Assembly: GCA_037447605.1 (NCBI GenBank)
Contig: CM074811.1
Location: 992,001-1,056,000, forward strand
DNA length: 64,000 bases
Direction: 5' to 3'
From: Zygnema circumcarinatum SAG 698-1b
Taxonomy: Eukaryota > Plantae > Zygnematophyceae
Position 1 is the first letter of the stretch; the number at the start of each line of letters is the position of its first letter. Below, in pieces: positions 6,541-59,700 of the stretch. The notes under the pieces are model-generated. The model was not told where the DNA came from. It made no database searches and saw only the letters and a list, made by a program, of their open reading frames with translations. A program made the translations under genes and the position numbers.

Positions 6541-7460
6541 GACCCGTGAAACTTTCCACGTCCGCTTGACAACTCCAACCGGTCGAAGGAAGGAGCTTGG
6601 CCCGTCAGGACGCGCCCTAAAAACAGAAGCAGAAAAAAAACAAAAAACCATTCCCCCGGGCAGCCCGCCGGAGATATTTCGCCGTGTTTTCGCTTTCTGA
6701 CAGGCAAGAGTGCCGTACCGTACGGTAGCTTTCCTGAACCCTCCGCGCAGCCGACAAAAGCCGGTTTCGTGGCGGGACGGGCAGGGTTCAGGGACCACGC
6801 GAACCGCCGCGGGACGGCGCCGGCGGTGCAATGATTGGTTTGTGGCCCGCGGGCGGGCGTCGCTGGCGAGTGGGCCCGGGGCTCGGGGACAGCGGTCATT
6901 ACAAAGAATATTTTTGCAAAAGTTCAAGTAGAACGGATGTTTGTTTGAACTCACGATGGCTCACGACTCGCGTTCGGATAAAAAAGAACCATTCAAAATT
7001 GAAATCTCCCGCCCGAGCGGCGCTGAGCACGGCCGCATTTCCCTTTTTGCAGCGCATCTTGGAGGGATTTTGGTTTGGATTTCGGCCATTCCGCCTCCGT
7101 ACACGAACTGTACCATGGAGAATCCATGTCAACAACTGTGCCTTCGCGCGTGCGAGGGTTCGAACTCCGCCCCCTCCAAAGTCCAAGCCGGCACGCGCCG
7201 CAACGACTGCGACGCACGGTAGGGGCACTGATCAGCAACGCCACGTGGCAGACCTGCATGGAAGGCCGCGTGGCAGCTATGTGGCCGTCCCGCGATCCGC
7301 GCTGCCGGTCCTTCGCCGACTGCGCCGGAAATCAGTCCGTACAGGTTTGCCAATCACGTGGCAGCACATGGCCACGTGTCGCGTGGCTAGTGGTTGGCAC
7401 GAGCAAGATGTGCTCTAGAAAGCTCGATTTGGTCTGTGCAAGGGCAGTGGCCGGATCGTG

Positions 7461-7970
7461 ATCTTGGATTCTTGGAATATTTTGGATTTTCTGAATATCT
7501 TAGATTAATAGGGGGAGTCAGACCTTGACCAGCGCCAAACCAATTCCGCGAGCCCGTCGGGCCAATTCCGCGTTGTACGGCAGGCCTTTTTCGCCAAAAG
7601 TGCACGTTCGACGCCCGAGCCTGTATCTCATTTTTGTAACCTATTTCGAAGTACGGACAAACCTATTTCGAAGTACGGACGGGACAGACAGGTTCGGGGG
7701 GAGCCGCGGTTTCCGATCCGAATTCTGCAATCGAAATCAATACCTTTCCGCCGGTGGAATCTTTCAATTCCGCGGGCGATGGTCAAGGTCTGACTCCCCC
7801 TAATGTAAGATATCGGATTCCAGAAAGAAATCTAGGATTTTCAGGAAGTCTGGAATACTGGGAAGATCTTGGATTTCATGAAGATCTTGGATTCTTGTAA
7901 GATCTCAGATTCCAGAAAGATCTTGCATTCTGAGAAGATCTTGGATTCTATGAAGATATTGAATCCTGAG
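7461..7970 (+). repeat. 18-bp minisatellite (consensus aagatcttggattcnnnn), interrupted by a MITE at 7510-7801
   Basis: Six clean 18-bp units at 7863-7970. More degenerate units at 7461-7509 and 7802-7862. Confidence 0.85.
7510..7801. mobile_element. MITE, 292 bp, TIR AGGGGGAGTCAGACCTTGACCA(G/T)CGC, 3-bp TSD AAT
   Basis: The left end agggggagtcagaccttgaccagcgc and right end gcgatggtcaaggtctgactccccct are reverse complements (1 mismatch in 26). AAT lies at 7507-7509 and 7802-7804. Removing the element plus one AAT restores an exact 18-bp minisatellite unit. Confidence 0.88.
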
Positions 7971-15864: not shown

Positions 15865-15980
15865 TTCGCGACCCTAAATTCTAAACCGTAAAACCCTACA
15901 AACTCTATTAGACCACCTTGAAAAACCTTAACCCTGAAGCCCTACATCCTGCAAACCCTAAGCCCTAAAACCCTAATCCT
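15865..15980 (+). repeat. Degenerate interstitial telomere-like (A/G)CCCTA repeats
   Basis: accctaaa, aaaaccctac, aaccctga, gccctac, aaaccctaagccctaaaaccctaat within ~115 bp. Confidence 0.6.
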
Positions 15981-16853
15981 TCGCCTTTGGCTCAGCCTTC
16001 ATTGAGACAAAGTCAGTGAGAGAGCATGGAACCGAGAGAGGGCGCGTGGCAGTGCCCGCGGGAGGAGGAAGAGAGAGGCCGAGAACGACCCCCATTGACG
16101 AACGGCAAGATTTGTCTCAGGCCCGAGGAAGGCAAAGGCGAGCCAAAGCCAGCTCACCGCGCGGCCCCAACTTGACTCGCCAGCCGGCCCTCGGGCGGGC
16201 GGGCGGGGACGCACGAGTCCATCCGAGCGAACGGCAACTGTACGGCCGGAACTTTTGAAAAGCGACAAAACGGCCGTAATTATTGCCCGCCGGAAACCGG
16301 TCGCTATGCCGGACGGCAGTGGCCTCTGGCGGGCGAGATCCAACGGCTGAGACTGCGCCACGTCATCCCTCTCTTTGCGCCACGTGGCACGTGTCGGAAC
16401 TCCAGCGCGCCGGTCAGCAAATTTCGGCGCCTTTCTTTTTTTACGGCAATCTGCCGCGGAGGGCCGTCGATTCGGGGCGGGATTTTGGCCGATGCCTTTC
16501 GGAAGGAAATTCTGCTTTCGAGGTTTGACTGCTCCACCCTCTCTGTACGGCGGGAGAACATTGGGTGCCAACCATTGGCTCTCTGCCAATGGTTTTTAGT
16601 TTGAGCTACAGTACTGTATTGCTTCCAGAATACTTAACGCTTAACGCTTTATCTATACACCAAACTTCGTCTACGGAGAAACAGACGGAGCGTGTGTCTA
16701 AGCGGTGTCCCTTCCCTATGTCTCGAGCTGCTGCTCTGAGAGCCCCTTCCTTTCTTCCCCTCTATCCAGCACCACTGCAAGCCATAATAATGTCTTCCTA
16801 ACCATCTGAACCCTAAAAACTAGCCAATATCCAACATAGTGTCTCCCCCTCCA

Positions 16854-17336: not shown

Positions 17337-17392
<56 letters not shown>

Positions 17393-17986: not shown

Positions 17987-18017
<31 letters not shown>

Positions 18018-27530: not shown

Positions 27531-27559
27531 CTAGGCACCCAGTGCAAATGGCTCGAACA

Positions 27560-27790
27560 ACAAAGGATGTGGCATCAATCTCACGATGGCGATGACGATG
27601 CTATCAAATGTACATGGACAAAATCAGCACGGGGAACCACGAGGAACTGGTTGCAAAGAACCTAGGACAAACGGAAAAAACTCGAAGCGGAAAGCTACGC
27701 CTAGGCTCAACAAGCCAGCCCTCCCTCGAAGCAGCCACAAAGGTCGCCGATGTGCGGCACATCGCGCTGAGGGAAGGAGGGAGAGAGGGA
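27560..27790 (+). repeat. Copy of the dispersed ~230-bp repeat family. Other copies: 13965-14086+, 28660-28760+, 28785-28845-, 28965-29125-, 29669-29746+, 49386-49462-, 49988-50180+
   Basis: Shared core ggcattga.ctcacgatggcg..gccatcaaatgt(a/g)catggacaaa...ca(t/c)ggggaaccacgaggaact..., with a distal ...ctaggctcaacaa in the longer copies. Confidence 0.85.
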
Positions 27791-29789
27791 GCGGCGGAAG
27801 GCCACCGACACGGCCACCAACAACCGCGGCTTCACGTTGAAGGAGCGGAGAAGCGAGGAAGAGGCTCACGCTGAAGGGCGGAAAATGGAAATGCGTTGTT
27901 GATAAAAAGTAGCGAGGATCGCCGGAGGAGGAGAGGAGGGGCCGTGCGCGCATCTCAAAGGAGCGATGGGCGCACGCGCGCAGGCACGCACGCACTGGCG
28001 GAGGAAATGGACTGACGGACGGACGGCTTCCAAACGGGCCTCCTCGAGGCGACCTCAAATTAACAGCAACAGCCGTAGGACCAAACTCGTCGGCCGCGTC
28101 ACGTCACGTCACGTCGCGTCACGTCACGTCGTGTCACGTCACGTCACGGTGGACATGTGCGCGCTGGCTCCTTGCAGAGGGAGGGAGGGAGGGAGCGCGC
28201 AGGCCCGCCCTCCCTCATGCTGCGCTGCAAGCGACAGTACAGTACATCGCGACATGTCGGATCGGCCTGCCAGCACAGGCGGGCCTCTGGCGCAACTCGC
28301 CGAAGCCCGAGGAGGGCCTCTGGGATTGCCAGGCTTTTCCTCCACGCCACGTGGCGCCTGCCTTGTGCCACACGCGTGCCAGGGCCGGAGATCGCTTGCA
28401 ACGTGGCGGGTGCGAAGGGCCTACTATACTGTACTGGCGCCGTACGGCGCGCTGGGCTGGCGGCGCGGCCGTACGGATGGTGGCGGCTGACCAGCCAGCG
28501 CGTGGGCGGGCGCCGGCTGCGATCCGTTCGTTCGCCCAAAAGTTCGCCCTACGCACTGGGCGGGCAGACGACCGCCCAGTCAGCGGCCGCCGCGCAGGCA
28601 GCAGTGGCGCCGTTGCAATCGAAGCAAAAGGGGCCAGCTGGAAGGAAACATAAAATTGGTATTTGTCTCACGGTGGCGATGCCAACAAACAACAGCAACA
28701 ACAACATGGGGAGCCACGAGGAACCAACCGCTCACAAAGGACCCAAAGACAAGAAATGAAAAATGCTAAATGCCTAATTGCCTTCGCGGTTGCTTCTAGG
28801 GCCGCCCGCGTTGTTTAGCTCAGAAGTAGATTTTTGCGAGCTTTAGTGAGCCTTCCTTCCCTCAATGCCACATCCCTTCCCTTCCCTTCCTCCCTCCGTC
28901 GACCGTACAGGTGCCCCTGACCCAATGACGAGGGATGGATATAGAACGCAAAAAGGGAAGAGAAAAACCTGGGCGTTGTTGAGCCTAGGCGTAGGTTTCC
29001 GCTCGTAGCTTTTTTCTTTTGTCCTTAGGTCCTTTGCGACGAATTCCTCGTGCCCAGGCTGACTTTGTCCATGCACATTTGATGGCATCATCATCGCCAT
29101 CGTGAGATCAATGCCATTTTCCCTCAAAAAAGGGAAGAGGAACTCTGAAGTCGCTTGTACGGACTTGTCCCTACAGTAGGGGGTCCTCGTATTTACCGCC
29201 TAGGGAGTGCGTCCTCAAGAAATTCTCCCCTATTTTGCCGAAACCACCTTTTTGTACGGTAACTTGGTGTTAGCCGTACTATTCGTACTATTTTTACTGT
29301 CCGTACTAGCTGTACTAGCCGTTACTGGCTCACGCAAAACTCACCTAATCTCCCCGCACGAGCCGCCGTAAGAGGCGCTCGCAGTTCTCCCCTTCTTCTT
29401 GGCTTCAATACGATACAATACGATACGATACGACACGGTACAATACGAAACGCCCCGATACGGTACTATCCGTACTAGCCGTATGAGCTGTAGTAGCCGA
29501 TACAGTACGATAAGGTACAATATGATACGGTACGATACGTACGGTCCAACATGAACTCTAACATAATACCGCCCTTCTATTGGTAACACGAACCTTATTT
29601 ATGCAAAATCAATATTTTCGCCTCATATTGGCCAAAACCAGGGTGGAAAATATGAGGACTAGGGATGGGGAACTTTCATTGAACTCGCGATGGCGAGGCC
29701 ATCAAATGTACATGGACAAAGGCAAAATGTGGAACCACGAAGGACTGGACTAGGGATGGATTAGTTACGATTATATATTATATATTATA

Positions 29790-30827
29790 GGAAAATGATA
29801 CAGCGGCCCCACTTTTTGAATATCGGCGCCCCCTTTTGGGAAAAATTGTACTTTTTTTTTTGGCTAATCACCCCCCTTGGATCTTTCGGGAGGAGAGATC
29901 TTGTAGACAATCGGACCCCGCGCCTCGCGCGCAGGATCCGACCGTGCACCGACGTACGGCGCCGCGCATCGCGGCGTGGCCCGCGAGATGCGGCGAGCCT
30001 ACGGAAAAGTTGTCCTCACCTAACCCGTTTGGGTCAGAGGTTGCCACGTGGCAGTCTGCCATTGGACAGCCCTACTGCCGGTCCCCCATGCCGATGCAGT
30101 GGACCCCCATAATATTTTCCACCTTGTACAGTGCGTCCCCAAGAAATTCGCCCCGATTTTGCCGAAACCACCTTTTTGTACGGTAACTCAATGTTAACGT
30201 ATTAGGGGTGTTAACCTAACCTGACCTATTCTCCAATACAAAATCTGTTAATAGAAACGGATTTCAAACATGGGTCACGCTTTTATGCTGTACGGTAAGT
30301 ACGAATATAATCTCTAAGTCATACGGTATACGTACGGCACCAATAGGAGCTCGTGTATCTAAATCAAGGTACGATACGATACGATACGTACGAACAGACA
30401 TGAACTCTAACATAATACCGCTCGCCTATTGGTAACACGGACCTTATATTTGCAAATTACAATATTTCCGCCCAGTATTTGCCGAAACCATGGCGAAAAT
30501 ATTATGGGGGTCCACTGTATCGGCATGGGGGACAGGCAGCAGGGCTGTCCAATGGCAGACTGCCACGTGGCAACCTCTGACCCAAAAGGGTCAGGTGAGG
30601 ACAACGTTTCCGTAGGCTCGCCGCATCTCGCGGGCCACGCCGCGATGCGCGGCGCCGTACGTCGGTGCACGGTCGGATCCTGCGCGCGAGGCGCGGGGAC
30701 CGATTGTCGACAAGATCTCTCCTCCCGAAAGATCCAAGGGGGGGGATGATTAGCCAAAAAAAAAAGTACAATTTTTCCCAAAAGGGGGCGCCGATATCCA
30801 AAGAGTGGGGCCGCTGTATCATTTTCC
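29790..30827. mobile_element. Foldback element (~305-bp arms), GG...CC ends, 8-bp TSD ATATTATA
   Basis: ggaaaatgatacagcggcccc ... ggggccgctgtatcattttcc. atattata lies at 29782-29789 and 30828-30835. The arms meet at a central TA occupied by a later insertion. Confidence 0.92.
30097..30517. mobile_element. Tc1/mariner (pogo-like) MITE, 421 bp, 23-bp perfect TIR CAGTGGACCCCCATAATATTTTC
   Basis: Flanked by TG (mutated TA) and TA. Internal segments 30131-30195 and 30365-30500 are homologous to 29211-29275 and 29525-29655 of the outer MITE. Confidence 0.87.
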
Positions 30828-31012
30828 ATATTATATTATACAACTGTGACGAATAGATAACGGCTGATATATATTAATTTACAACGCCTTTACAACATGT
30901 ACGGTCGTACGGTCGTACGACTGTACGGTATTATGCGGCCCGAGCACGAGCAGACAGAAAACCAGACGAACGTATTTCGCAACGCCAACGCCAAAACGAC
31001 CTAATTTTGGTA

Positions 31013-32590: not shown

Positions 32591-32719
32591 CTTCTCGACA
32601 TTTCTCCTTCTCGACATTTGTCCTTCCGAGAGCTTGTGCAGGAGGGCAGGAGAAGGGCAGGAGGGGGGGGTCCGATAGTGTGATGCTCGCTAGCAAGGGC
32701 TGAGGGAAGGGCAAGGGGA

Positions 32720-38700: not shown

Positions 38701-40245
38701 TTCACGAATGTGGTTTTAGTGCACTGCAACTTGGGCCATGGTAGGAGGGCTGCTGCGGAAGCGGTAGTGGCTGAAGTTGGCCTGCCATCGTCATACACTG
38801 AGAAAGGAATAGTGCAGCACAGGCAAAAGGAAGCTGAAAGAATAGTCCGTGAGGTTAGGGTAAAGCAAGCGAAACGGTTATACTTAGAGGCTTTGCACCA
38901 CTACAATGAAGCCCGAAAAGAGCTGTTGGGACTTGGAGAAAACTTGGAAAAGAGCATGTCAGGTCTTTGGACGGAAGTCTTAACTCAGTTTGGGCACACA
39001 TATCTCCGACTTGGAATGCTTCTCGCAGCAGAAGAAGTTGAGGCAGGTTTTGCTAACAATAGTGAGAGCCCCCTAATGGACCACGATGCAGCTTCTTCAT
39101 TCGACATAAGAGATGGGAGTAATGCAGGACCGCAGAGTAAAGGAGGAGGAGAAGATGTCGTGTTTCTGACAGCAAAGGACGCCATGACTAAAGCTCTTGT
39201 TTTGTATGATACACTTGGCAGCATCAGAAGGCAGGAATGTGCTTATGCACATCATCAACTCGCATGTAATCATAGGGATAGAGCTTTGCTCATAGCTGCA
39301 GCTGTAAGGCAGGAGGGTGCAGTGAAGAAGCAGAAAAGGGAGCTGCCGAGATCGCGGAGCAAACGGGAGGCTGCCACGTGGCAGCAACTGAGACGGTATG
39401 CTGCGCTGGCAGAAATTCATTGGCAGAGGGCGTTAGAGGTATATAAGCCCCAATCGCACCCTGACGTTTTCATCAATATAGCGATTGAAAGAGCCGATTT
39501 GTGCCTCGCCACAGCAGCACAGACCCCATCCATGCAGGTAAGCTGAAGGACAAACTTTTCCATGCGATAATATCGAAACATTAGGGTTGGTCGTTGGTCT
39601 AAGCTTTTGTAAGGGGGCAATTGCCTTTTATGCAGAGCTAGGATTGATTGCATAGGTTTGTTGGTCTTGCTAGATTCTGCCTTCGAAAACATCTCCACCT
39701 TCCTGATTTTGAGGGTCTCAAGAGTTAGGAATTGCTTCTTGGTAAAGGCAATAACTAGCTCGTCTTGTTTGTTTTGATGGAGCCACGATTCCTTGGTTAA
39801 GTTATGACTGCTTTCACAGTGGTGGTCTGATACTCTGCCTCCTCAAACTTGTCATTGTCAGGCACTTGAAGCATCCTTCAGTTATCTTTTGGAAAGCCGC
39901 CATGTCTGGATGCACCATTCACCCGATTCAAAGCCTGACCCCCCTATAGAAGAACCTTCCCATATTGAAGGACCAAGGGGTGCCACCGCTTCTCCTGCAA
40001 CCTGCTCCAAGCTCTGCCAGCGCATTCAATACCTTCTAAAGAGCATGCTCTCAGCCGCCATGGCTGCAAGTAGGCATTCGGGATTTGAGAAGAGTGCAGG
40101 CTCCTCCTCGTCCCAGCATTCCAAAGCTGAAGGGCGCCTCACTGTGAAGAATCTGACGGCCATGTATAGGGTGGCCCTTTCCTTGGAGCAGCCTCCACCA
40201 ATGGAGGAACTCTATGCCATGTGGATATTGCAAGAGCTTCCGTGA
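32720..40245 (+). CDS. EDRF1: EDRF1-like (erythroid differentiation-related factor 1 family) large TPR-containing protein, 9 exons including a 3.2-kb exon
   Basis: Exons 32720-32889, 33231-33346, 33682-33907, 34163-34835, 35105-35356, 35711-35887, 36087-36161, 36349-39537, 39862-40245. Conserved blocks: GFVCGSLPVP, DVIAPADILKQIFKTPYSKARLSVAVHRVG, FWQFQHIRMLLGSDLLLF, WLDNVMASVPELAICYH, GWVYNELG. Confidence 0.85.
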
Positions 40246-41309: not shown

Positions 41310-43692
41310 TCAGTCGTCGTCCGAGTCTGCTCATCCAAACCATTCAAAAGTTACAAAAATCACACTTTCCCGCCCGCAGAAAAACCTCAGGCTTTGCTTT
41401 GTATCACAGTTTTATGCAGATTGAAACCATCTTTTACAGCAAGTTCCTGTCTTTGCAATTAAGTAAGGAGCTTAGGAGTCTAAGGAGCCAACACACGCTG
41501 TAAGGGGAAAAGAAGCATACCTGATCTCACATCATCTCCCACTTTTCCGGAGTTCTGGAGCTGACGAACAATCATTCGGAAAATGAGGATCCACCAGTAG
41601 AGATGTATTACAAGGAGAATGATCAACAATGTGTTGAATGCATAGTACTGTTGATGCCAGTCAGGCCGAGTAAGGTCGATGTACTGCAAACACTCGACAC
41701 TGCCCCACACAAAAACAAGAGAAACATAGACTAAGTGCCGGCGCAAAAATCTCCGTCAACAGGAGGGGGAGGGGGAGGGGGAGGGGGAGGGGGAGACGAC
41801 AGCCTCCCTTGTACCTCTGACAATATCAGACGAATGCAAGCTATATCTTAGCTAACCTTAATCTCATACATTGATATAGTAAAGGTATAGATGTCACCTA
41901 ATACATAAGATTATAGATCCGAGTTGCATCAGGGGACAGAATGGAACTAAAAAGAAAGTTCAGTTGGAGAAAAAGGAGAGAAGCTGTAAAGTGCAACTTC
42001 CTCTGTTTCAACTCTTGCTCTGCTCTTAAGATGCTTGATTTGAATCAGATTATGACGACTCACCTTGTGCTCCATATGATCCAAAACGGAAAGTAAACAA
42101 GGCGGAGGAGAAACCAGGAGAGAGCGAAGAGTCCGAACAGCACACTGGCGAAAATTTCATTGCCGGAATACTTGAAAAGCTTTGCAGCTTCCATAAATAT
42201 GTCACTGATGTCATGTAAACCGAGAACTATGGAACCCACTCGGAAGTTTCTGCGCATGCCAACGATTGGAATAATTAAAGAAAAAACCTTCGTTAAGAAT
42301 GGCAGGGCCTCCACCGACAAGTACAACAATTGACAATCAAATAGAAATCATATTTTATTCTTCGCTTAAAGACATGCCGCCATATCCGCTACATCTGCCC
42401 CTCACCCAGTCACATAAGAGTAGCCGACCAGCGCAAAAGTGACTACATGATGAGTCATCATCACTGCAAAGTCCTTTCTCCTCGTCTCCCAAAACAAGAG
42501 AGCCGCCACACTATAGATGTAGAACCCAAACTGACCCGTATAGTACAGCTTCAGCTTATACCTGAAGCCCCCCTCAATTGAATCTGCTGAGAAATTCCAG
42601 GAAAAAATCAGAAAAAAGCGAGGAGAGGAAGGGAAAGGAGGGGAGGGGAAGGGTTGGGACACTGAACTGAAGATATCCATCACTCTTTCAAAAAGTGGCG
42701 CCTTTGCAACGTGAGAAGTAGTAGTCAGCAAGTAACGCATTCGGAAGTGACAAAATATGCAATTCGAAGAAGAACCAAAACGTGATGCAATTTGAATAAG
42801 GAGAGCTAAAAAACATGATGGAATCGGAACGAAGCGAACACAAGACACTTATCGGATATGCGCCCACAGCAACCAGCAGGAACTGATGCAGTTTTTTGCC
42901 TTTTTTCTGCCTTAAATGTGAGGGACACACTTGAGGGTTTGCGTTGGCCAGCCGTCCCAAAATGCCGCAGTGTTGTAAGCCCAGGGCTCATCCCTTGTGA
43001 TTGCGATGACGTAGGCTTCCAGGGCGCCATAGTACGCCAGCTTCCAGCACGACTCTGTGAACTTGGTCAGAGTTTTCTCCTTTGCCTCCACCTCCTCCTT
43101 CCTCAGCGCTTTCTTTCCGCGCGGGAAGAGGATGCGGTAGCCAAAGGTCTGCGCTTGTTGGGAGAGAGAGAGGGAGGAGGTCAGAGAGGAAGGGGAGTCT
43201 TGCTTTCTCTCTCTCAGGAAGAGGAGAGGGTGGAGGAGGGTGGGAGGGAGGGAAGGGAAGGGCGTGGGAGGTGAGAATTGGAGCTCATGTGGAGCATGTG
43301 AGAAGAGCGAGTTTAGGGAGGAGAGGTGAAGTCTGAAGTTTGAGGGATGAACGGATTGGATAAAGGATACAGTTTTGGAAATGCAACATTGTGAAATTAA
43401 GATCAAATCTTTCAATGTGCTTGCAACAAACGCGCTCCTCCCCCCCCCCCTCTCTCTCTCTCTCTGTCTCTCCCTCCCTCTCTATGTGTCATGTCTGCAT
43501 TACGCCCACCTGGAACAGCTGGCGGTCGAGCAGAAACCGCGCCAGAGGCCATATCGTGCAGAAAAGCACCACGAGTAGCGCATCATGCCACGTGGCAGTG
43601 CTCTGCTGTTCCAAGAACGAGGCCATGGCTCTCCTCCACCGCCAGCTCTCGACGACATGTCCGGGAAACCCTCCCGCAGCGCCTGCGAACAT
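41310..43692 (-). CDS. LOH2: Ceramide synthase (LAG1/TLC domain), LOH2-like, 6 exons, ~312 aa
   Basis: Exons 43692-43510, 43148-42931, 42561-42406, 42249-42064, 41699-41521, 41326-41310 (sum 939 nt). LAG1 motif RRKDFAVMMTHH...LHDISDIFMEAAK and C-terminus DVRSDSDDD. The LOH2 subclass call is from recalled motif similarity. Confidence 0.9.
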
Positions 43693-44421: not shown

Positions 44422-49071
<4,650 letters not shown>

Positions 49072-50224
49072 TAGGCCTTGCATTCGCAGCAGCACGTTTT
49101 GGCGTGAAGAGATGGCGAGGATGGCAATGGTAGCGGATGACTTTGTGTTCCATCATTTCTCAATCGTTATGCAATAGAATTTTTCCAGCCGCTGTACGCC
49201 GTGGCGCATGGCGCTGTTCATGCACCCATGAGTCATGCATGCATCATGATGTGCTTGATGCACTGCTTCCACACTGCATGATACATGGCATGGAACGGAG
49301 GGAGGGATTGAAGGGAGTGGGACTGTGGAAGGGAGTGGCGTCCTTGCATTATTAGGCCTTGTCACACTTGGTGCGCTTTCATTCTTTCCTCGTGGTTCCC
49401 CATGACGATTTTGTCCATGTACATTTGGTGGCCTCGCCATCGTGAGTTCAATGCCACTTCCCTTTCCTCCATCCTTCAACCTTTTCCAACTTTGCTGACG
49501 TGGTCACGGTTGAACTATTTGGAGACGAGCGACGTTGAACCTCGTGAAATTAGGGTTGTCTTCGTACCGGATGAAAAATGGGGTAAACTAATTAAATCCA
49601 AATTACCGACTTAAACAGTGACACGCGGCAGACCTGCTCACACGTTCTTTGATGTACCGCAAGGTGCCACGTAGGCGACAGGTGGCGTGTTGCTGTTGGT
49701 GGGTAGCTGGGCAAAAAGCGACGCCCCTCTGGCATGCAATGATGCAACCGGCTGTCGCGTGCAGGCGGTTTCCATTCAACTGGTTGAAGCGAGTTGAAAA
49801 ACGTCATTTCAGAGGTTTACAAAACGAAACGCTCCGCCTCAGTTTCCAACTCCGGAGCACCAACCAGTTGAATGAAGTTGGATCATGAAAAACGCACCCT
49901 AAAAGTGAAAACGTTGGGCTCGATAACCCTTACAGAATATTGCAAATTAGTATGGATAATCTAATGCCACAACATTTTCTCCATAAAAAATGGAATCGGC
50001 ATTGACGTCGTGATGGCAATGCCATCGAAGGTACATGGACAAAGACAACATGGGGAACCACGAGGAACTGTTGACAAAGGAGCTAAGAACAATAGAAAAA
50101 AGTTACGAGCTGAAATCTGCTTCTAGGCTCAACAACATGGCCCTACAAACAGCCGCGAAGGTTGCAATGTGTGGCAAATCGCGGGGAGGGAGGGAACCTA
50201 AACATAATATCAAAACTACCTAAC

Positions 50225-50340
50225 AAATGGTTCGAATCACTGGCAATGGTTGCGAATCCAATGGTTGGAACCAACCATTGCCAACGGTTGCTTGGCTCGC
50301 GAATCCACGCTTGGCAACCATTGCCAACGGTTGGTTGACG
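50225..50340. repeat. Third AACCATT/AATGGTT array
   Basis: caatggttg, ccaatggttgg, ccaaccattgccaacggttg (twice). Confidence 0.7.
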
Positions 50341-51811
50341 GTCTGCCCAGTGTTCTATGCCATTGCACATACCATGCATGCCTATGCCCATGCCCACCCC
50401 CCCCCCATGACCGAAATGGGGGATGCCATGGCACGCATGGCTGCCCATGCGCTCGCTCGGTCCCGTCCCGCGGCGGGACCAACATCCCGCCCGTCCCCTT
50501 GTCGCTGTCCGCCGCCGCCCGACGTCCCCCGGAGACTCGGCAGACCTGGCATCGGTGTTACCACGTGGCAGATTCTGACTGGCCATCAGGGCCTACCTGT
50601 CAGAGTACGGCAGCCCTGCCACGCTTTATCGTGGCCAGTCAGAAGGCGCCACGTGTTCCACGGCGTTCCCTCTCCCTTCCCACCGCGCGCACGCCGCCCG
50701 CCGCTAACCGCGCCGCCCTCGCAGCCTCCGCCCGTCCGTACACCCTCCGTATATTGTCCGTATAGGACCCGCGGGCCCGCCTCGCGGGCTCGCACGTACC
50801 CACGTCACGGCGCCCATGCTGCCACGATTGACGTCATTATCCTCGTCATCGAATCTTTCACAAAATCTATATCGTGGCTGGAAAGCGCCGCCTACCTGCC
50901 ACGTGGCCCTGCCTGCCAGCTGGCACCATATCTCGGCCGCCTCTGCGGGTTCCCCGCCGCCGCCTCCACGTCGGGCTATTTTGTCCGTACGCGCATTATC
51001 CGCCGCACGTCGCCCGAGCGCCCCCGCAATTCGCGCTCCTCCAAGGAAAATATTTCGGCCCAAGGGGCCTCCGCCACGTGGCGCAATATCCTGGATCGCA
51101 CGTGCGATGACCCGAACTTTGCGGTTCGCAGGTGCCGGCCGCTCCTAGCCACATCAAATTTTCTGCGCGTCACGTGACGCGCTGCCGCCCGCCAGCTCGC
51201 ATTGAATGACCGCCCACGCGGCAGGCACGGCTCGGCCCGCCCGTCTACACGTTTGTCCGTACCCATACAGTCAAACTTATCCGTACGGAATATCGAGGTT
51301 TTGGACTTTTCTGAATGCTGCGTCATTGCCGGCCAGCAGCTGACCGGCGGCGGCCGGGCGGCAGCCGCCCAAGGGCGGGATGTTCGAGGGCAGATCGGCG
51401 GCGGAGAGGCGCCGAAGGAGGATCGGACGGCGGGCAAGCGCGCACGCGCGCCGCGCGGCTCCACGTTGGCGGAGGGGCGTGGGGGCACGACGTGGAGGCC
51501 GCGGGGGCGAGAGCGCGAGGCACGGCGCCACGTGGCGGGGGGGGAGAGGGCGAGGGCGCGTGGAGCCCCTAGAAGGCGCGGGAGCGCGAGGGGCAGATCT
51601 TGCTGCGAGAGGGAGAGGGGTCGGGAGAGGGAGGGAGAGAGGGCGGGAGTGAGAGGGAGGGAGGGAGTGGGAGAGAGGGAGGAAGGGTGAGAAGAAAGGA
51701 GACACTAGAGGAGGGAGAGAAGAAGGGAAAGGGAGAAGAGACAGAGAGGGGGAGAAGCATAGGAGAGGGAGAGAAGAAGGCAGACGGACAGAGGAGGCGG
51801 TGCAGGCGCGG

Positions 51812-52395
51812 ATGCAGAGGGCGGGGATGGAAGGGAGCTCCTTCCAGCAGCTGCCGGTACGCAGTGATGTGCGCTGACTTTGAGTCATCATGGAGGGGCG
51901 AGAATGGAGAAGAGAAGGGAATGGAGCGGCAGTGTGTGTGGGAGAGAGGGAGAGAGAGAGAGTGAGAGAGAGAGGAAGTGAGAGGCAAAGTGTGGGAGGA
52001 CGAATCTTAAACTAGGATGAGAGAAATGCATTAAAATGAGGAGAGAGAGATTAAGCGCGATGCAGAGAGAGCGAGAGTAGTGTGAGAGAGGGAGAGGGAT
52101 AGAGTCTGATTGCCTGCATTTGGGTTCTGGAAGCAGGACGAAATAATATGGAAAATCGCCTCGCACGTGTGCTCCACGGCCGCCTCTCCCGCGGACTTCC
52201 TCGTCCTCCCTTTTGTGTACGACCCCTGTGCCTCTCTGGGCTCTGTTTGCAGCGCTGACCGCGGTCCATGGGCGGCAGTTCTGTCGGCCGTAGAAAGGCT
52301 GCATGTAGCGCACGGGGAGAGCGTAGATGGCCGTGGGGATGCATGAGAGGCGACGGCGGAGAGAACAAGGGATGAAGAGAGTCAGAGAGGCATGC

Positions 52396-52427
<32 letters not shown>

Positions 52428-55400
52428 GAAAAGGACGAGAGGGAGACGAGGGGAGACAGGAAGAGAGGTACGGGACTGAGAGAGGTGGAGGGGGGGGTGG
52501 GTGAAGAGAGGTGGCAAAAGAGACAGACAAACGGAGATAGGGGGAGGGAGATAGACAAAATGGGGGAGAGAGAGAGAAAGTAAAAGGGTGAGAGAGTTGG
52601 AGAAATAAAAAACAACAGTAGGTGGCTGGATGGATGCAACACAAGTAGCCTTGGTAGCTTTGGCACGCACCCTCCCCCTCCCCCTCCCCCTCCCTTTCCT
52701 CATCCTCCTCCCTCCCTCCCCTTCCCCCCCCTCACCCTCCCTCCCTCTCCCTCTCCCTCTCCCTCCCCCTTCCAGGTGCCGGCAGTGGCGCCACGTGGCG
52801 CGCGATCCTGCCCTGCTGGCGGGCGCGTCCCTTGGGGCCGTCGCCGTCCGCGCGGGGCAGTGGGAGGGAGGCCGCGCCTTCCTGCGGAGGGCGGCGGAGG
52901 GCGGCTCGCTGCACGCGGCATGCATGCTCGGCGTGGTGGGTCTCTGTCCATCCTTTCTCTCTCGCTCTCGCTCTCGCTGGCCCGCTCTCTCTTCTTCCCA
53001 CTCTGATTCTTTCTTATTTCCGTCAGTCTGGTCGCTGTCTTACTTTGATCTCCCTCTCTCTGTGCTCTCTTTTCTTTCCTCCTTCGCTCTCAATCTCATG
53101 CCCCTCGCCTACAATCCAACCCAACTTGTCCTCCTGCACTCCCTTGCCTCTTCATTCTCTTGCTCTCCTTCCTCCTCTCCCCTCCCCCTCCCATCATCCT
53201 TGTCTTGTCATTCTCCCACCCTCAGTTCTGCCCTCTCCTTCCCCCTCTCCCCTCATACCCCCCCTCCCATCCCTCCCTCCCTCCCCCCCCTCCCTCCCTC
53301 CCTCCCCCCCCTCCCTACCTCCCTCCCTCCCCCCCTCCTTTCCCTCCCCTCCCTCCCTCCCTCCCCCCTCCCTCCCTCCCTCCCTCCCTCCTCCTCCCTC
53401 CCTCCCCTCCCTCCCTCCCTCCCTCCCTCCCTCCCTCCCCTCCCTCCCCTCCCTCCCTCCCTCATCTTCTACAATCTCCACCCCCTAACCCATTCCTCGT
53501 GGTTTCCTCCCACTTCCAGATCCTCTTCTACTGCGTCCCTGAAGCCCGCTCTGAGGGAGGCCGCCTCCTTGTATCGGCCGGGAGGGCGGGCCACGCGGCC
53601 GCCCTCTTCGCCGCCGCGATCATGAGCTTCAATGGGAGCGGGTGGGGGCGGGCCACTAAGGACCTCAGGATGGGGGTCGCCCTCTGCGCGAGGAGTGCCG
53701 CTCTGGGGAATGTGGAGGCCATGAGGGAGCTCGGACACTGCCTGTTGGACGGGTTTGGGACAAAGCAGGATCAAGGGGAGGGGTGGAGACTGCTGTTGCA
53801 GGCGCATCTGATGGAGATTATGGGGACGGGAGGGAGGGAGAGGGGGAGGGAGAGGGGGAGGGGGAGGGGGGAGGGGGAGGGGGGGGAGGGGGGCCGGCGA
53901 TGAAGAGGAGGAAGGTGGAGGGAGGAGGAGAGGGAGGGAGGGGTGGGAGAGAGATGGGTTGTGTGGATCTGTTTGGCAATGGGAGGCCCATGGCTCCTGC
54001 AGAGCAGCAGGCGGTTCTGCAGGAGCTTCTGCAGAGGAGGCAGACACGTGTGAGCAGAGCAGCAATCGCTTCCTTTGTGAAGAGTAGGACGCCTGCAATG
54101 AAGGATGACTGTGGTGGGGAGATGGGAGGGGTGGCGGTAGAGGGAGGGGAAGGACAGGAGCAGGAGGAGGGGTGCAGTGTGTGTCATGGAGGGAGGGAGA
54201 GAGAAACAGACAGTCACGTGGGGCTGGGAGTGAGCGGAGATTGTATTCCAGAAAGTTCTGAAACAGTTACTGCAAGTGGGGTCCACGACATCCCATCACG
54301 CCACGTGTCACTGCAAGGGAGCTTGAGAGAGGGGCACCCTATGGAGAGGGAGGCGGAGGAACGAGGGATGAGGGGAGTAGGAGAGAGAGCGAGAGAAAGG
54401 GTGCAGCCGAGGTCTATAGCAGCTCGATCGATCACTGCTGCGGGAGCTTCCTCTGCGGCAGCCATGGCTGGAAGATCATCTTTCTCAGCTCCTCGATCTG
54501 CAGCTGCGAGAGCAGCCATGGCTGCCATTTCTGGGCGCCACGTGGCAGGAGGAGATGAGTCTTCGGCTTCAAGTATTGGTTTGCCGTTTTCGGCAAAGCG
54601 GGCCGGGGTTCCCGGACGAAGGGGGGGCAGAGAGGGAGAGGGAGAGGGTGAGGGAGTCGGGGAGGGAGAGGGAGATGTCTCTACTTCTGCTGCAGCAGAG
54701 GAAGAGAGAGTGAAGATAGTGCAGATGCTGGCGGCAGGAGTGGTTCCCGATATATCGACAAAAGGGCTAAAGAATATTTTGGGGTGTCTTCAAACATCCG
54801 TTACAAGGCGGCCCCCCCATCCGGCAAATGTGTTTTTGATGGAGTGGTTTGGAGGGAAGGAGGGAGAGGGGAGGGAGGGGGCGCTGGGGAAGATAGAAGA
54901 GGGGCTCGAGTTCTGCGGGAGGGAGGCGTGTGGGAGGCCGGAGACTCGCAAAATGGAGTTTTGGAGGTGCTCATGCTGCTGGTCTGCAAGGTGAGAGACC
55001 CCACCTTCTCTCTCTACCACCCCCCATCCCTCTTGTCAACCTCACCGTTTTTTTTCTCCCTCGCTGTGTCCATTTCCTTCGTTTCGTCAGTCTCTCTCCT
55101 CCACATTTGCTTTTTCCCTCCCCACCCCCCTTTCCCCTCTTCCCCTCCCCCTCCACCTCCCCTCCCCTCTCCTCCCCTCTCCTCCCCTCTCCTCCCCCTC
55201 TCCTCCCCTCTCCTCCCCTCTCCTCCCCCTCTCCTCCCCCTCTCCTCCCCTCTCCTCCCCTCTCCTCCCCTCTCCTCCCCTCTCCTCCCTCTCCTCCCCC
55301 TCTCCTCCCCCTCTCCTCCTCCCCTCTCCTCCCCCTCTCTTCCCTCTCCCCCTCTCTTCCCTCTCCCCCTTCCCCCCTCTCACCTTTCCTGCAGTCCGGG

Positions 55401-55509
55401 CCCCTGCGCGTTCAGGTACTGCAGCCGCTCCTGTCAGCTCCACGATTGGCGGCTCCGCCACAGCGCCGTCTGCCGCCCCTCCGCCTTCCGCGCGCCGGAC
55501 CAAGAATAG
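51812..55509 (+). CDS. F-box protein with Sel1-like repeats and a C-terminal MYND zinc finger (At1g67340-like), carrying a long low-complexity insert and an apparent frameshift
   Basis: Exons 51812-51856, 52137-52216, 52776-52935, 53520-54990, 55416-55509. F-box FQQLPDEIIWKI; ALFAAAIMSFNGSG...DLRMGVALCARSAALGNVEAMRELGHCLLDGFG; CGREACGRPETRKMEFWRCSCC..RYCSRSCQLHDW..H...C. Exon 4 is one base short of frame. Confidence 0.85.
55140..55380 (+). repeat. C/T-only tandem tract ((ctcctcccct)n-like) in the last F-box intron
   Basis: About 240 bp almost entirely C/T in 9-11-bp units. Confidence 0.9.
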
Positions 55510-56757
55510 GGCCAACACAACATGGGTTCTCTTTTCCATTTCTTTCTTTTTTTCTTTCTTGGGGGTTCTTTTTTCAGTTGTATTCGCAAAAATAAAGGCT
55601 TCTAGAGAGCCATTTCATTTGAGTGAGGATGGGTTTTTCCCTTTTTAATTGGATGCAGTTAATTGGTGAGCAGTCGTTACTGCATTCGGATCTCAGAGTA
55701 GGGACTGGCTCGTTTAGTTTAGGGGGCTGGAGGCACACCATTGGGAGGGAGAGCGAAAGGTTCTATCTTCACTGTTGTCTGTAAAGAAGCGTCAGGTTTT
55801 TGTGTATATGCAGCGCTTGCCTTTCTGTATCGCTTCTTTTTTATTGGAAGGGGACACAACCAAACAGAAAATGTGTACCCATCACTACAAAGAAGCTTTT
55901 GAGCTTTTTTTTAGGCATGTCGATGGGAATGTTCTCATATGCTTCTCACAGGAGGGACCAAGGAGAGGAGAAACGAGAGAGGGGGCGAGGGAGAGATGGC
56001 GAGAGCGGGAGGGGCAGAGGGAGAGGGGGGACTTGTAATATGGAAGGAGAGGAGGACCGGGAGAGGAGTGGGGGAGGGAGACTTGATCTAAAAGTGAGAG
56101 AGCGGGAGAAGAGAGGAAGAGAGGGGGACGGACCGAAGGAGGCCAAGGGAGGATGGGGAGAGAACACACAGGTCAAACAATGACGGCATGAAATTTAATA
56201 CTGTAAATGAACAGTATAAATCTACAATGCAAAATAGAACTGTGGTATAAGGTTTTAACTTAGCTTAATCTGGCACTGAATTAACCGGAAAACAAGACTC
56301 CGTTTTTGCATATTGCAGCAGTTCGCAAACTCTGGCAGCTTGAAGTCTCTCTGAGAGAAGATCAAGATTAAAAAAGAGCAAATTACAACCTTGTCCTGTT
56401 CCAGACTCTGTACACGATCGTCCTCTCTCTTCCATATATCTCTCTACCCTCTCACTCTCCCCCTTCTCTCTCTCCTCCCTCTCTTCCTCCCTCTCGTTTC
56501 TGTACATTCCCGCAGTTCACCGAAGCCAGAATCCATAGAAATCCCACCCACGCCGCTTTCCTGCAACATCCCCATCCTCAAGAAAAGAAGTGTCAGTGAC
56601 ACAAAGAAACTCACAACTTCAATTATATACTCTTTGTGATGACAATATTCCCAAGACACGTTACTTTGAATACAAGGGACAAAATGGGTCTGATTCTCGT
56701 ACTGCAAACCGCTGATCCCCGTTCCCTCGCTATCGTTCCCGCTTCGGCTCCACTCAT

Positions 56758-59700
56758 TTAGCTCGCCTCAACAAATACCTGTATGAGCAAATCACATAGA
56801 AACAACTCTCCTCCGTTTCAATCAACTTTACGGAACTTCACAGTTTTTCCAAGTACAAGATTTCTGCATGCATATCTGACTGACTTAATGTATCACTAAG
56901 GATGACTGCGTGTTTCCTCGAGGCTTCTAAAACTTCATTTCGGTGTGCACGCTCTGAACTGTTCTATGCTACATACAAATTTCCGTCACGTACGGTTAAA
57001 CTGCATTGGCTACATGGAAACAGTTGCACTGCATAGTAAGAGATCTGACATAATAACCCACCTCTGCCGCTGGAAGTGTGTCGTACGGTTTTCCCTCTCT
57101 CACATCCTGAACACCAATTCCGGTAATTCGCTGAACTCCAGGAGCGAGGGCCACCAGACACTGTTCCCCTCCAGAAATTTTACCAGATAACAAATTATGA
57201 AAGGGAAAGAAAAAAAGAGGAGGGGTGGGGGGAGGCAGAGGGGGGGGGGGGGGGGGGGGGGGGGGNNNNNNNNNNGGGGGTCATTCTGTGTACATGAAAA
57301 AGCACCTTATTACTCAAAAAAGTTTACTTCACGATATTCCGGGATTAAAGAGGACATACCAGACTGAATTCAGTACTAGAATGAGGCTCCAAGCCGGGCA
57401 CAACCTGCACAGCCAGAATAATTATAATTTGAAGACCCCAATCAAAATCTTTTCAGTACATATTCACATTTTGTACATGGATACAAGCGGACATAAGACT
57501 GCTCCCTCTCTCTTCCTCGCCATGTCTAAAAGGCAGATCGCCACAGTGTGGGCAAACACAAGACAACCAATGAACGCTGATAGTAGAGGCAAAAGTGCTG
57601 AAATACTAACCAGAGCTTTGGGCCCACTAACTATGACTGCCCTCCCTTGCAGGTCTTCTCCCGCCATACTAATCCGGAGAGGGCCAACACTGCGATCTGT
57701 GCAGTTCGCAAGGCGGCATTGGACCTGTTCCAGAATCCGTTCCACTGTCACCGTTTGCTCTCAGCACGCATAGGACACGTGATCAGGAAGAAGCTTAGAA
57801 GCTATAGAAGCTTCTGCTACGATAGATAGAGAGGAGAGGAGAGAGGGACAACAGGGTGTTCAGGGTGAACAAAATACGAGTTTCAAAGACTTTGAAGGGC
57901 CAAAATCCTATATATTTCCTATTAGTCCTTTGATGTAAGCAGTAAAGAGTGCCTATACATATTGAGCCCAATTACTGTCCCACCCAATGGACAATAAAGC
58001 AGTGTTGTATGATGAGAGGTCCGAATGAACAAAAAGCTTATGCACGATGAGAACTGAGCGTGAGGGAGAGTGTGAGAGAGAGAGAGTGGGAGTGGGAAGA
58101 CACTCTACCAAGAAGGGCTTCTCAAGGACCACTCGTTTGGGCAGCTCAACAAAGCGTAGTTCCACCTCCTTCCGGGGCATAGGCTGCCCTCCCCCATACA
58201 CAAAAATCCATATCACCACACAAACTCACTTTCCAACTACACCACCATGAGCCCCAAAGTCTCTATCACATTCGAAACTCCTAAGAAGCTCATTCTCAGC
58301 CACTCACGTTCCCCAGAATCTGTTGTGTCTGAAGCCTCCCGGGTTCCCCTAGAGTTGTGCGCCACATCATTTCCAGCTTCCCCAAAGCGTTCCCTCCCTC
58401 TCCCCCCTCCTGCGGGACCCTCTCCAGCGAGTAGAGGAAGTTGCGGGACCCCCCATTGGCTGCAACGAGGTTCACTTTCTTGAAAATTCCACTGCTTCAC
58501 AAAAGACACAGGTTCACATTTCTTAACGTTTAGGGTTTCGAGGTCGTTTAGGGTTTCGAAAACGTTTTGGGAACACGGGGATTTCACAAATTTAGGGTCC
58601 TTAGGGGTTGGTGTGTGGATGTGGTAAAATACTCACAAACGACTGGACTCATCTAAAATTGCTCACTAGCTGCATTGCTGATTTCAAGTTTTCAAGTTAT
58701 AGTATTTACTATACTGATATCGAACTAACGAAACATGGCACAGATTGCGCAGTACTGAGTTTGTGGGGCCCACCCGAAGACGTCATCTTCCGCCACGTGG
58801 CGGTCCTGGGGGTCGAGGAGGTCGGCCCGCCAGCTGGCAGCGGGGTCGAAGCGCACGTGGTCGAGCAGGAGGGGCAGCTTCGTGCTGTTCTCGACACATG
58901 CCTCGAGAAAGGTCGACTCCTGCAACAAGCCACATCACATCACATCACATCACATCTATACATCACATCACATCACATCTATACATCACATCACATCTAT
59001 ACATCACATCACATCTATACATCACATCTATACATCACATCACATCACATCACATCACATCACACCGTACAGCGTATATTATAGACACTGTTGTGAACTG
59101 CAACAGATCACGGCCAAAGAGAACTGAATTCAGGATCGACACGAACAGACTTCCGTCGTGAATAAGAAGTTCCGTGATGAAACATTGCAACATGCTTTCT
59201 GTTTATATGACAACATTAAAACTCCTGCATGTAGACGCCGCTATATTTCCGCAACTTGCTGCACAGTTTATGCTGCAATGAAGCGGCCGACCAACATTTG
59301 ACCCCACGTGGGAAATTGTGAATAAGGAATGCCATTCTCTATGACCTGACAACGAAAAAACTTCCGACGCGGTAGGGGTGCAATGTGGGCGATGATGAGC
59401 AGCTTCTATGGGTAATGTTATGCTATTACATATGGAAGGAAACAAGGGGTGGAGTTATTAGTTGCCTCTTAAGGTTTCGCAAAACACATTATTTCAAACA
59501 TAAGTTGAAACAATGTTTCTTCATTTGCTTTGGTCAATGACACTGCGAAAGTGGAAAAAAAAAAAAGTTATTTGAAAGGCAGCCAATGGTTAGGGAGTTG
59601 GTCACCAACTCACTCCGAACAAAAAAGAAGGGACTCCTCCACAGCTACGCAGTTACTGCGACTTGACGTCAAAGAATATCACCTCTAGGAGGTAAAGGAA

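Follow-up and report, generated by a model that had tools for sequence, protein, structure and literature searches.

Why should one 10-bp palindrome, GCCACGTGGC, recur both between genes and inside exons of genes that are otherwise unrelated? In the 64,000-nt stretch of Zygnema circumcarinatum SAG 698-1b DNA analyzed here (the window), the word has 13 exact copies (Table 1), each of them precisely where a sequence-only reading had located it. This density of one copy per 4.9 kb corresponds to an enrichment of ~150-fold over chance. Across all null models run, 0.03-0.64 copies are expected. This is the range of Markov models of order 0 to 7, which were fitted after the GCCACGTGGC copies had been taken out, whereas dinucleotide shuffles of the window gave a mean of 0.08 (maximum 2) and local-composition models (1-2 kb) a sum of 0.04-0.06 over the window. 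The huge over-representation claimed earlier thus holds under every null, including Markov models up to order 7. No copy is present in four loci (64 kb in total) taken from other organisms for comparison, and literature searches produced no report of GCCACGTGGC, or of hyper-abundance of the G-box, in streptophyte algae. A comparable density has previously been described only for bacterial iterated palindromes.

Three copies reside in homology-proven exons, two in probable exons, two in the arms of a foldback transposon and six in non-coding DNA. A sequencing or assembly artefact was ruled out, because the exonic copies keep the reading frame within protein that can be aligned. At 57266-57275 the assembly has a gap within a poly-G run; it touches no copy, and the nearest GCCACGTGGC is 1.5 kb away.

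Table 1. Exact GCCACGTGGC copies and the foldback transposon that carries two further copies, in window coordinates.
Feature	Position	Strand	Context
GCCACGTGGC	7240..7249		Non-coding; CpG-rich stretch at 5.0-7.5 kb
GCCACGTGGC	16379..16388		Non-coding; overlaps a second G-box (GCCACGTGGCACGTGTC)
GCCACGTGGC	28346..28355		Non-coding; most CpG- and ACGT-rich stretch of the window
Foldback transposon	29776..30840		Arms of 347 nt, 95% alike; 8-bp target duplication ATATTATA
GCCACGTGGC	39373..39382	+	1074-codon exon (36322-39543) of EDRF1-like gene; reads A-T-W
GCCACGTGGC	43587..43596	-	Inferred first exon of ceramide synthase (TLC) gene; A11-T12-W13
GCCACGTGGC	50898..50907		Non-coding; CpG- and ACGT-rich; 0.9 kb upstream of inferred ATG (51806) of F-box-like gene
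GCCACGTGGC	51073..51082		Non-coding; same stretch as 50898
GCCACGTGGC	51527..51536		~280 bp upstream of inferred ATG of F-box/Sel1/zf-MYND gene; start and exon 1 inferred by reading
GCCACGTGGC	52790..52799	+	Exon 3 (52777-52935) of F-box/Sel1/zf-MYND gene; reads R-H-V-A
GCCACGTGGC	54537..54546	+	444-codon open frame (53660-54991) of F-box/Sel1/zf-MYND gene; reads R-H-V-A
GCCACGTGGC	58792..58801	-	TRAPPC13 middle-domain (TRAPPC13_M) exon (58728-58934); reads R-H-V-A

The word extends to a 12-bp dyad, YGCCACGTGGCR, which is perfect at nine of the 13 copies, and ACGTGGCR is formed at 25 of the 26 positions that flank them. Among 370 ACGT half-sites in the window, ACGTGGC is the most frequent (48), followed by ACGTGAC (19) and ACGTGTC (14); GC..GC flanks surround 13 of 47 CACGTG cores. 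A general GCCA...TGGC dyad was considered and rejected, as 13 such dyads have a CG center, three a GC center and other centers occur at most once. The word therefore has the CACGTG core and the bZIP-type flanks (ACGTGGC half-sites) of the plant G-box/ABRE, the element recognized by bZIP factors of the GBF, ABF/AREB and HY5 classes as well as by certain bHLH proteins. It is identical to that element in sequence and also shares its half-site preference, ACGTGGC > ACGTGAC > ACGTGTC.

As a perfect palindromic G-box/ABRE, GCCACGTGGC would be a high-affinity site for a dimeric bZIP protein of the GBF, ABF or HY5 class; a bHLH binder seems less likely. If each monomer contacts one ACGTGGC(R) half-site, the functional unit would be the 12-bp dyad. 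A de novo promoter motif from peach that includes the GCCACGTGGC 10-mer, core and flanks, was matched to bZIP factors (PMC8133646), and it is known that the specificity of G-box-binding factors depends on the flanks (PMC6419578; bioRxiv 10.1101/128371). Plant regulatory elements, including the G-box hexamer, can also work from within transcribed regions (PMC11525189). The half-site hierarchy, the dyad extension and the neighboring cis-elements described below are compatible with a bZIP-type binder. We therefore lean toward the view that the copies are sites under selection for a dimeric G-box factor of the bZIP type, which uses them in promoters and in gene bodies alike. This view infers bZIP binding, selection for that binding and a transcriptional role of the intragenic copies.

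The sequence-only reading had attributed the intergenic copies to carriage by transposons, and this proved correct for one pair only. Each arm of the foldback element holds one exact copy (30043 and 30562) within a CCAAT-N9-CCACGTGGC module, accompanied by a GGNCCCAC site. These two are the only copies with shared extended flanks; the flanks of the other 11, which include all six non-coding copies outside the element, are unique. Transposons thus account for only two of the 13 copies. Small foldback or MITE-like elements might nonetheless have spread the word, with the remaining copies being relics or coincidences, and a repeat family does border the stretches that hold 28346 and 50898/51073. 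However, the interiors of these stretches are not homologous to each other. Moreover, a 10-bp insertion would disrupt the reading frame, whereas the frame is intact through the exonic copies and the protein around them can be aligned, so the earlier judgement that transposons do not explain them stands. We regard dispersal plus chance as very improbable. Under the bZIP reading, the element would carry a mobile promoter-like module in which selection for binding has retained the word.

Five of the six non-coding copies outside the foldback element have CpG-rich, ACGT-rich surroundings. Copy 7240 lies between the start of the PCO gene (~4.6 kb, minus strand) and the 3' end of a kinase gene, with near-copies at 5409, 5439, 6144, 7265 and 7371 and a CGCACGTGCG at 6212. 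Copy 16379, with CCACGTCA 19 bp upstream, resides in a local 500-bp segment with a GC content of 0.63 and 59 CpGs. Upstream of copy 28346, by ~200 bp, is a (CACGT)n array, and two CCGTACGG elements follow ~100 bp downstream; members of the 120-230 bp repeat family border this stretch at 27552-27778, 28646-28768 and 28975-29122. TGACGTCA occurs 68 bp upstream of copy 50898, and the 12-mer palindrome TCGCACGTGCGA is 24 bp downstream of copy 51073. Copy 51527 would, on the gene model, be situated in the proximal promoter or 5' UTR of the F-box/Sel1/zf-MYND gene. As in plant G-box/ABRE promoters, copies in CpG-rich promoter-like DNA stand beside CCAAT, GACGTC and GGNCCCAC elements, and it is in such stretches that selection for binding could retain the exact word. 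ORFs spanning 7240 and 16379 have no Pfam match. Teloboxes are present near 16379 (15892-15969 and 16809), but telobox co-occurrence was ruled out as a general feature: a telobox lies within 300 bp of two of 13 copies, compared with ~2.7 expected.

The exonic copies occupy unrelated genes, both strands and two reading frames, as had been claimed. The count of five such copies is secure for 39373, 52790 and 58792, which are homology-proven, whereas 43587 and 54537 are in probable or inferred exons. Copy 39373 is 6.6 kb from the start of the EDRF1-like gene, in a segment that is variable among orthologues. Copy 52790 begins 14 nt past the acceptor ...ttccag|G. Copy 58792 is 2.9 kb from the TRAPPC13 gene start; Pfam profile positions 14-61 fall in its exon and positions 61-120 in the next (58299-58496). 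A GACGTC is 13 bp from this copy and an overlapping GGNCCCAC pair is 26-29 bp away, whereas companion elements are few or absent around 39373, 52790 and 54537. The first exon of the ceramide synthase gene was assigned because of its frame, its start context (GCCATGGC) and the downstream TLC exons, and copy 43587 lies 30 nt past its ATG (43626-43624, minus strand); searches of PDB, NCBIfam and Atlas with this exon returned no homologue. The open frame around 54537 is probably an exon, in which the copy falls within a 227-codon lineage-specific linker between two blocks homologous to an orthologue. Of the words of 49900-55800, 41-53% are present in six runs from the same organism whose type is uncertain (five are unlabelled and one is guessed to be RNA). 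This fits, without proving, a transcript in which exon 5 is long.

For spliced gene models, each exon was queried separately; training a codon-usage score on the EDRF1-like exon gave too weak a signal for calling exons. The TRAPPC13 exons had no match in PDB, NCBIfam and Atlas, ten ORFs spanning GCCACGTGGC sites had none in Pfam, and no match came from word searches using fragments of the F-box-like gene or from an exact-product look-up of the NF-YC ORF. The proteins of Z. circumcarinatum itself seem to be absent from the searched collections.

Comparison with a codon-shuffled null, which the sequence-only reading had called for, upholds the coding enrichment. In the 15.3 kb of supported coding DNA of the window, four copies are present and 0.017 are expected from codon-order shuffling; synonymous shuffling predicts 0.90, and none of 2000 shuffles reaches four. 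The encoded peptides are themselves in excess in this DNA, with ATW[LPHQR] seen twice (0.07 expected) and [SRGC]HVA three times (0.19 expected). At 52790, the histidine of R-H-V-A, with which the word becomes complete, is found in none of nine aligned relatives, and the four closest have RRVA, KRAS, RRAS and RQTA. GCCACGTGGC is missing from the equivalent site of a relative's transcript, and generally from the available orthologues, whose protein identity of 41-72% marks them as distant. Within exons, the DNA word prevails over the protein and has altered it. A bZIP-type factor could impose this outcome if selection for binding retains the word at protein segments that tolerate A-T-W or R-H-V-A.

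When encoded by GC-rich codons, the orthologue peptide W-R-R-V-A is a single step away from the word. This is what would be expected if GCCACGTGGC were a mutational or repair by-product without selected function, in which a context-biased process turns near-words that arise from GC-rich codon usage (for example, GCCGCGTGGC) into the exact word, by biased gene conversion or by a bound factor that protects the CpG against methylation and decay. The overall CpG observed/expected ratio of the window is 0.73, which implies that CpG decay acts in this DNA, and only one of 13 one-mismatch variants is of the CpG-transition type. However, shielding concerns two of 10 positions and would raise the equilibrium frequency by a few-fold at most, not ~150-fold, and a context specificity of 10-12 bp would still require a sequence-specific protein. 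Also, a relative's GC-rich locus (58.6%) has nine ACGTGGC half-sites but no exact copy. These points make a by-product very improbable.

A more serious alternative is suggested by how sharply the word is defined. The window contains 13 additional one-mismatch copies of GCCACGTGGC (1.2 expected), so exact copies equal the sum over all 30 one-mismatch neighbors; in coding DNA, exact copies outnumber them five to three. The commonest variants are GCCACGTGTC (three) and GCCACGTGAC (two). Of the near-variants listed previously, 54300 and 63269 do have one mismatch, those given as 7376 and 14394 actually begin at 7371 and 14393, and 50648 has two mismatches. Cyanobacterial HIP1 (GCGATCGC) is likewise a short perfect palindrome that occurs in coding and non-coding DNA alike. 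HIP1 is over-represented 15-300-fold, is under selection and occurs about once per gene or more often (PMC5861425, PMC4390886). In the window, GCCACGTGGC falls in this range of over-representation against composition and Markov nulls, and its presence in coding and non-coding DNA exceeds codon expectation.

The sequence-only reading had suggested that a genome-wide mechanism may maintain the word (methylation or repair bias, protection from CpG decay, or a chromatin-organizing binder), where within the window ordinary selection for transcription-factor binding may act instead. It is conceivable, though in our estimation unlikely, that the palindrome is kept genome-wide regardless of annotation for a role other than transcription. 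A DNA methyltransferase or a sequence-specific binder would then mark it for use in repair, recombination, replication or chromatin organization. In a eukaryotic counterpart of HIP, YGCCACGTGGCR might possibly be kept at about one copy per gene genome-wide regardless of coding status, overriding protein. A sequence-specific system with the G-box binder, or a partnered methylation or repair activity, at its center might then serve chromatin organization, recombination or self-marking of DNA, a scheme we likewise hold to be doubtful. The word is at least as dense in supported coding DNA (4-5 per 15.3 kb) as in the remainder (8 per 48.7 kb), some exonic copies are deep and solitary, and short perfect palindromes are in general excess in the window (10-mers, 117 compared with 63; 12-mers, 45 compared with 16). 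Nevertheless, the word is identical to a known transcription-factor site and its variants track the bZIP half-site hierarchy. The non-coding copies are unevenly spread, clustering in CpG-rich stretches with cis-elements, and literature searches found no eukaryotic precedent. Unlike HIP1, which has 8 bp, the Zygnema word is 10-12 bp long, eukaryotic and less dense, and no cognate methyltransferase or binder is known for it. The role of HIP1 itself is debated, and its function is unsettled after three decades.

Some observations do weigh against the bZIP reading. The equality of exact and one-mismatch copies is sharper than is usual for transcription-factor sites and resembles HIP1. Gene starts in the window were inferred from homology and reading, and most of them are without an exact copy; only two to four copies are near one (43587 and 51527; perhaps 51073 and 50898), and three of the exonic copies lie at a depth of 1-6.6 kb in their genes. 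The Arabidopsis G-box, in contrast, is enriched <500 bp from the transcription start (bioRxiv 10.1101/128371). Unlike the plant G-box/ABRE, the exact 10-12-mer in the Zygnema window is as common as all its one-mismatch neighbors together, amounts to about one copy per gene and has more than one third of its copies in coding exons, some of them kilobases from the gene start.

Should the exonic copies function as binding sites, they would indicate the extent to which regulatory code is loaded onto coding sequence in a compact genome of the plant lineage, with amino acids chosen to spell a transcription-factor site, and would offer a tractable system for intragenic G-boxes. Retention of the word for a genome-level purpose would instead make it the first HIP1 analogue in a eukaryote. 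On either reading, gene finders, motif-enrichment tools and codon models for the Zygnema genome must allow for GCCACGTGGC.

Two other systems bear comparison. Vertebrate CpG-island words (NRF1 GCGCATGCGC, TCTCGCGAGA and USF-type GTCACGTGAC) are dimer-binding, CpG-centered palindromes that are among the most over-represented words and reach into 5' UTRs and first exons. They are tied to transcription starts, whereas several Zygnema copies are deep in gene bodies. The two transposon-borne copies form the CCACG part of a module that resembles the ER stress element, CCAAT-N9-CCACG; the other 11 exact copies differ from that module in lacking a CCAAT at this distance. A mirror-image pair of the CCAAT-N9-CCACG module is also present at 44165/44199.

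An exact search of the whole 64-kb window recovers 13 copies of GCCACGTGGC, a 10-bp palindromic word with a CACGTG core, and both the count and the coordinates agree with the sequence-only reading. Dinucleotide shuffles of the window contain a mean of 0.08 copies (maximum of 2). For Markov models of orders 0-7, trained with the 13 copies removed, the expectation is 0.03 to 0.64 copies; the proposed excess persists against a high-order null. Summed over windows of 1-2 kb, local order-1 and order-2 models expect only 0.04-0.06 copies, so the count is not a product of GC-rich stretches. In the window, GC..GC flanks are present on 13 of the 47 CACGTG cores, and the full 10-mer makes up 13 of the 16 occurrences of CCACGTGG. 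Copies with one mismatch also number 13 (1.2 expected), so the exact word is as frequent as its 30 neighbors combined. The word extends outward, as ACGTGGCR is formed at 25 of the 26 positions flanking the copies, and nine of the 13 are perfect 12-mers (CGCCACGTGGCG, n = 5; TGCCACGTGGCA, n = 4). An assembly gap (57266-57275) within a poly-G run is 1.5 kb from the closest copy and has no bearing on the count.

Genes were annotated via single-exon homology (see table), and the top protein matches of the window are liverwort and Spirogloea proteins with 41-45% identity. At least three inferred start codons (EDRF1-like, ceramide synthase, and NF-YC) bear GCCATGGC, which occurs 13 times in the window, including at 32732, 43622, and 62682, versus 1.1 expected. 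Rather than a second iterated palindrome, this word is probably the start-codon context of this alga. Microsatellites of the (CCCT)n/(GA)n type fill the introns of the three kinase genes and are the most frequent words in the window; a TCCCCTCTCC-type microsatellite occupies 55146-55323, within the final intron of the F-box-like gene.

Genes, exact GCCACGTGGC copies in exons or candidate exons, and repeated elements of the window
Feature	Position	Strand	Basis or remark
PCO gene	~2.4-4.7 kb	-	exon homology
Three receptor-like cytoplasmic kinase genes (tandem paralogues)	~8.7-12.3, 16.9-19.4, 22.4-25.3 kb	-	exon homology
EDRF1-like gene	32.7 to ~40.5 kb	+	exon homology
Ceramide synthase (TLC) gene	41.5-43.6 kb	-	exon homology
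Adenosine-kinase-like pfkB gene	~44.5-49.1 kb	+	exon homology
F-box/Sel1/zf-MYND (F-box-like) gene	~51.8-55.5 kb	+	exon homology
TRAPPC13	57.4-61.7 kb	-	exon homology
NF-YC	from 62.7 kb	+	exon homology
Exact copy, 1074-codon EDRF1-like exon	39373	+	reads A-T-W
Exact copy, inferred first exon of ceramide synthase gene	43587	-	reads A11-T12-W13
Exact copy, 53-codon exon 3 of F-box-like gene	52790	+	14 nt past polypyrimidine-AG acceptor
Exact copy, 444-codon open frame of F-box-like gene (probable exon)	54537	+	in 227-codon lineage-specific linker
Exact copy, TRAPPC13 exon	58792	-	translation matches Pfam TRAPPC13_M positions 14-61
Foldback element	29776-30840		carries 30043 and 30562, one per arm
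120-230 bp repeat family	13964, 27552, 28646, 28975, 29667, 49386, 49979	both	
CCGTACGG palindrome	6718, 20640, 27277, 28440, 28469, 32079, 37410, 51281		

Five copies had been assigned to coding exons of four genes. Homology upholds this placement for 39373, 58792, and 52790. The first of these resides in a variable stretch immediately ahead of a conserved block, and A-T-W is absent at its position from all eight aligned EDRF1-like orthologues. The exon downstream of that carrying 58792 picks up TRAPPC13_M positions 61-120. The exon that follows that of 52790 (53520-53825) is a Sel1 repeat, for which a full HMMER search returned orthologues in a single stretch at 65-72% identity, among them an F-box-like/Sel1/zf-MYND transcript. 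Nine of these relatives can be aligned to exon 3 itself, with identities of 25-45%. Its W-R-H-V-A-R-D corresponds to W-R-R-V-A-R-D, W-K-R-A-S-Q-D, W-R-R-A-S-R-D, and W-R-Q-T-A-S-E in the four closest. Because none of the nine has His at this site, the residue seems to be specific to this alga, and the CAC codon that encodes it completes the word. In the orthologous transcript this stretch is spelled TGG AGA AGG GTA GCA, which lacks the word.

The remaining two assignments are less firm. The 54537 copy probably lies in an exon: its open frame shows homology to an orthologue at the start (residues 83-124) and at the end (residues 351-444, running into the MYND finger), the linker that holds the copy is located between these blocks, and the other frames are closed about every 100 codons. 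The 43587 copy is downstream of an ATG in GCCATGGC context; its reading frame terminates in a GT and precedes the TLC exons. No homologue of this short exon was found by any tool, and the copy is therefore a candidate exonic one.

Coding DNA constitutes ~24% of the window and holds four or five of the 13 copies; with five, exact copies there outnumber the three one-mismatch neighbors (53590, 54300, and 63269). Homology-supported coding pieces were pooled into a 15.3-kb set (5,085 codons; 54537 excluded) that holds four exact copies. Shuffling codon order within each piece yields 0.017 copies, which bears out the predicted excess over a codon-shuffled null for this part of the window's coding DNA. 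When synonymous codons are shuffled and the protein is kept, 0.90 copies result, and none of 2000 shuffles reaches four. The peptides themselves are over-represented in this set, since ATW[LPHQR] (2 seen, both spelled by the word; 0.07 expected) and [SRGC]HVA (3 seen, 2 spelled by the word; 0.19 expected) both exceed the expectation from amino-acid composition. In the coding copies, the protein is shaped by DNA-level constraint.

Most of the gene starts inferred for the window lack an exact copy. The copies are only weakly tied to such starts, solitary copies are situated 1-6.6 kb within genes, and the exact word dominates its neighbors. These traits, which are sharper than expected of ordinary transcription-factor sites, resemble those of the cyanobacterial palindrome HIP1 (PMC5861425, PMC4390886). 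It is possible, though doubtful, that the word is similarly kept for a non-transcriptional role.

Outside exons, the foldback element has 347-nt arms that are 95% alike and an 8-bp target duplication, ATATTATA; each arm contains CCAAT-N9-CCACGTGGC and a GGNCCCAC site. Dispersal by transposons accounts for the two copies in this element (30043 and 30562). No flanks common to any other copies were found in the window, and the proposal that transposon carriage explains the intergenic copies therefore fails beyond these two; as the main cause of the 13, dispersal is highly improbable. Members of the 120-230 bp repeat family, probably the ends of small transposons, adjoin the stretches with 28346 and with 50898/51073, whose interiors share no homology. 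Five of the six non-coding copies outside the foldback element (7240, 16379, 28346, 50898, and 51073) reside in 500-bp bins with 48-73 CpG (mean 24), which also hold up to eight further ACGT cores. The 51527 copy precedes the ATG inferred for the F-box-like gene by ~280 bp.

Judged by its sequence, GCCACGTGGC is a perfect palindromic G-box/ABRE. ACGT half-sites in the window follow the bZIP hierarchy (ACGTGGC, 48; ACGTGAC, 19; ACGTGTC, 14), and among one-mismatch variants the ABRE-type words GCCACGTGTC and GCCACGTGAC are the most frequent. The identical 10-mer was found de novo as a motif of co-expressed promoters in peach and matched to bZIP factors (PMC8133646). Factor choice at the G-box is set by its flanks (PMC6419578; bioRxiv 10.1101/128371). 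Moreover, plant regulatory elements work from inside transcribed regions, in an assay whose 6-mers included the G-box hexamer (PMC11525189). Half-site hierarchy, ABRE-type variants, the peach match, companion cis-elements, and this intragenic precedent lead us to favor, by a modest degree, the reading that a dimeric bZIP-type binder uses the copies as selected sites in promoters, a mobile promoter-like module, and genes. Such a factor would bind GCCACGTGGC, selection would keep the exact word in promoters, in the foldback-borne module, and in gene interiors, and the intragenic copies would be functional. A purely mutational by-product appears quite unlikely: shielding of the central CpG would cover just two of the ten positions, and a specificity of 10-12 bp would presumably call for a sequence-specific protein anyway. 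We found no report of this phenomenon in the literature, and all our results concern one 64-kb window.

No exact copy is present in four comparator loci of other organisms (64.4 kb in total), namely an EDRF1-like locus on a metagenome contig (14 kb), the Riccia EDRF1 locus (26 kb), an F-box-like transcript (2 kb), and a 22-kb locus, GC-rich (58.6%), from the genome of a relative. The last has 10 CACGTG cores and nine ACGTGGC half-sites. Thus, hyper-abundance at these genes is not a general feature of streptophytes.

Besides GCCACGTGGC, the non-repetitive words that rank highest in the window, namely TCGCACGTGCGA, CCGTACGG, teloboxes, and CCAAT-containing words, are plant cis-elements or their dyads. 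The CCGTACGG palindrome (8 copies versus 0.33 expected) has a GTAC core and resembles a dyad of the SBP-box site; its 37410 copy is within the EDRF1-like exon, and two others are ~100 bp away from the GCCACGTGGC copy at 28346. Another perfect G-box dyad, CGCACGTGCG, is present three times (6212, 14292, and 51097) versus ~0.02 expected under an order-3 model, and two of the three form the 12-mer TCGCACGTGCGA. Perfect palindromes exceed an order-3 Markov null both as 10-mers (117 versus 63 ± 7) and as 12-mers (45 versus 16 ± 3.4), and this excess persists in the window with the G-box copies removed.

About 200 bp away from the GCCACGTGGC copy at 28346, a tandem array of the CACGT pentamer (gtcacgtcacgtcacgtcgcgtcacg...; ~28090-28145) forms a series of overlapping TGACGT/ACGT cores. 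The interval that separates the start of the ceramide synthase gene from the pfkB kinase gene contains two CCAAT-N9-CCACG modules in mirror image (44165 and 44199). The divergent TRAPPC13/NF-YC promoter contains five teloboxes (AACCCTA; 61724-61882) and no exact G-box copy; another three teloboxes (15892-15969) are ~400 bp away from the GCCACGTGGC copy at 16379.
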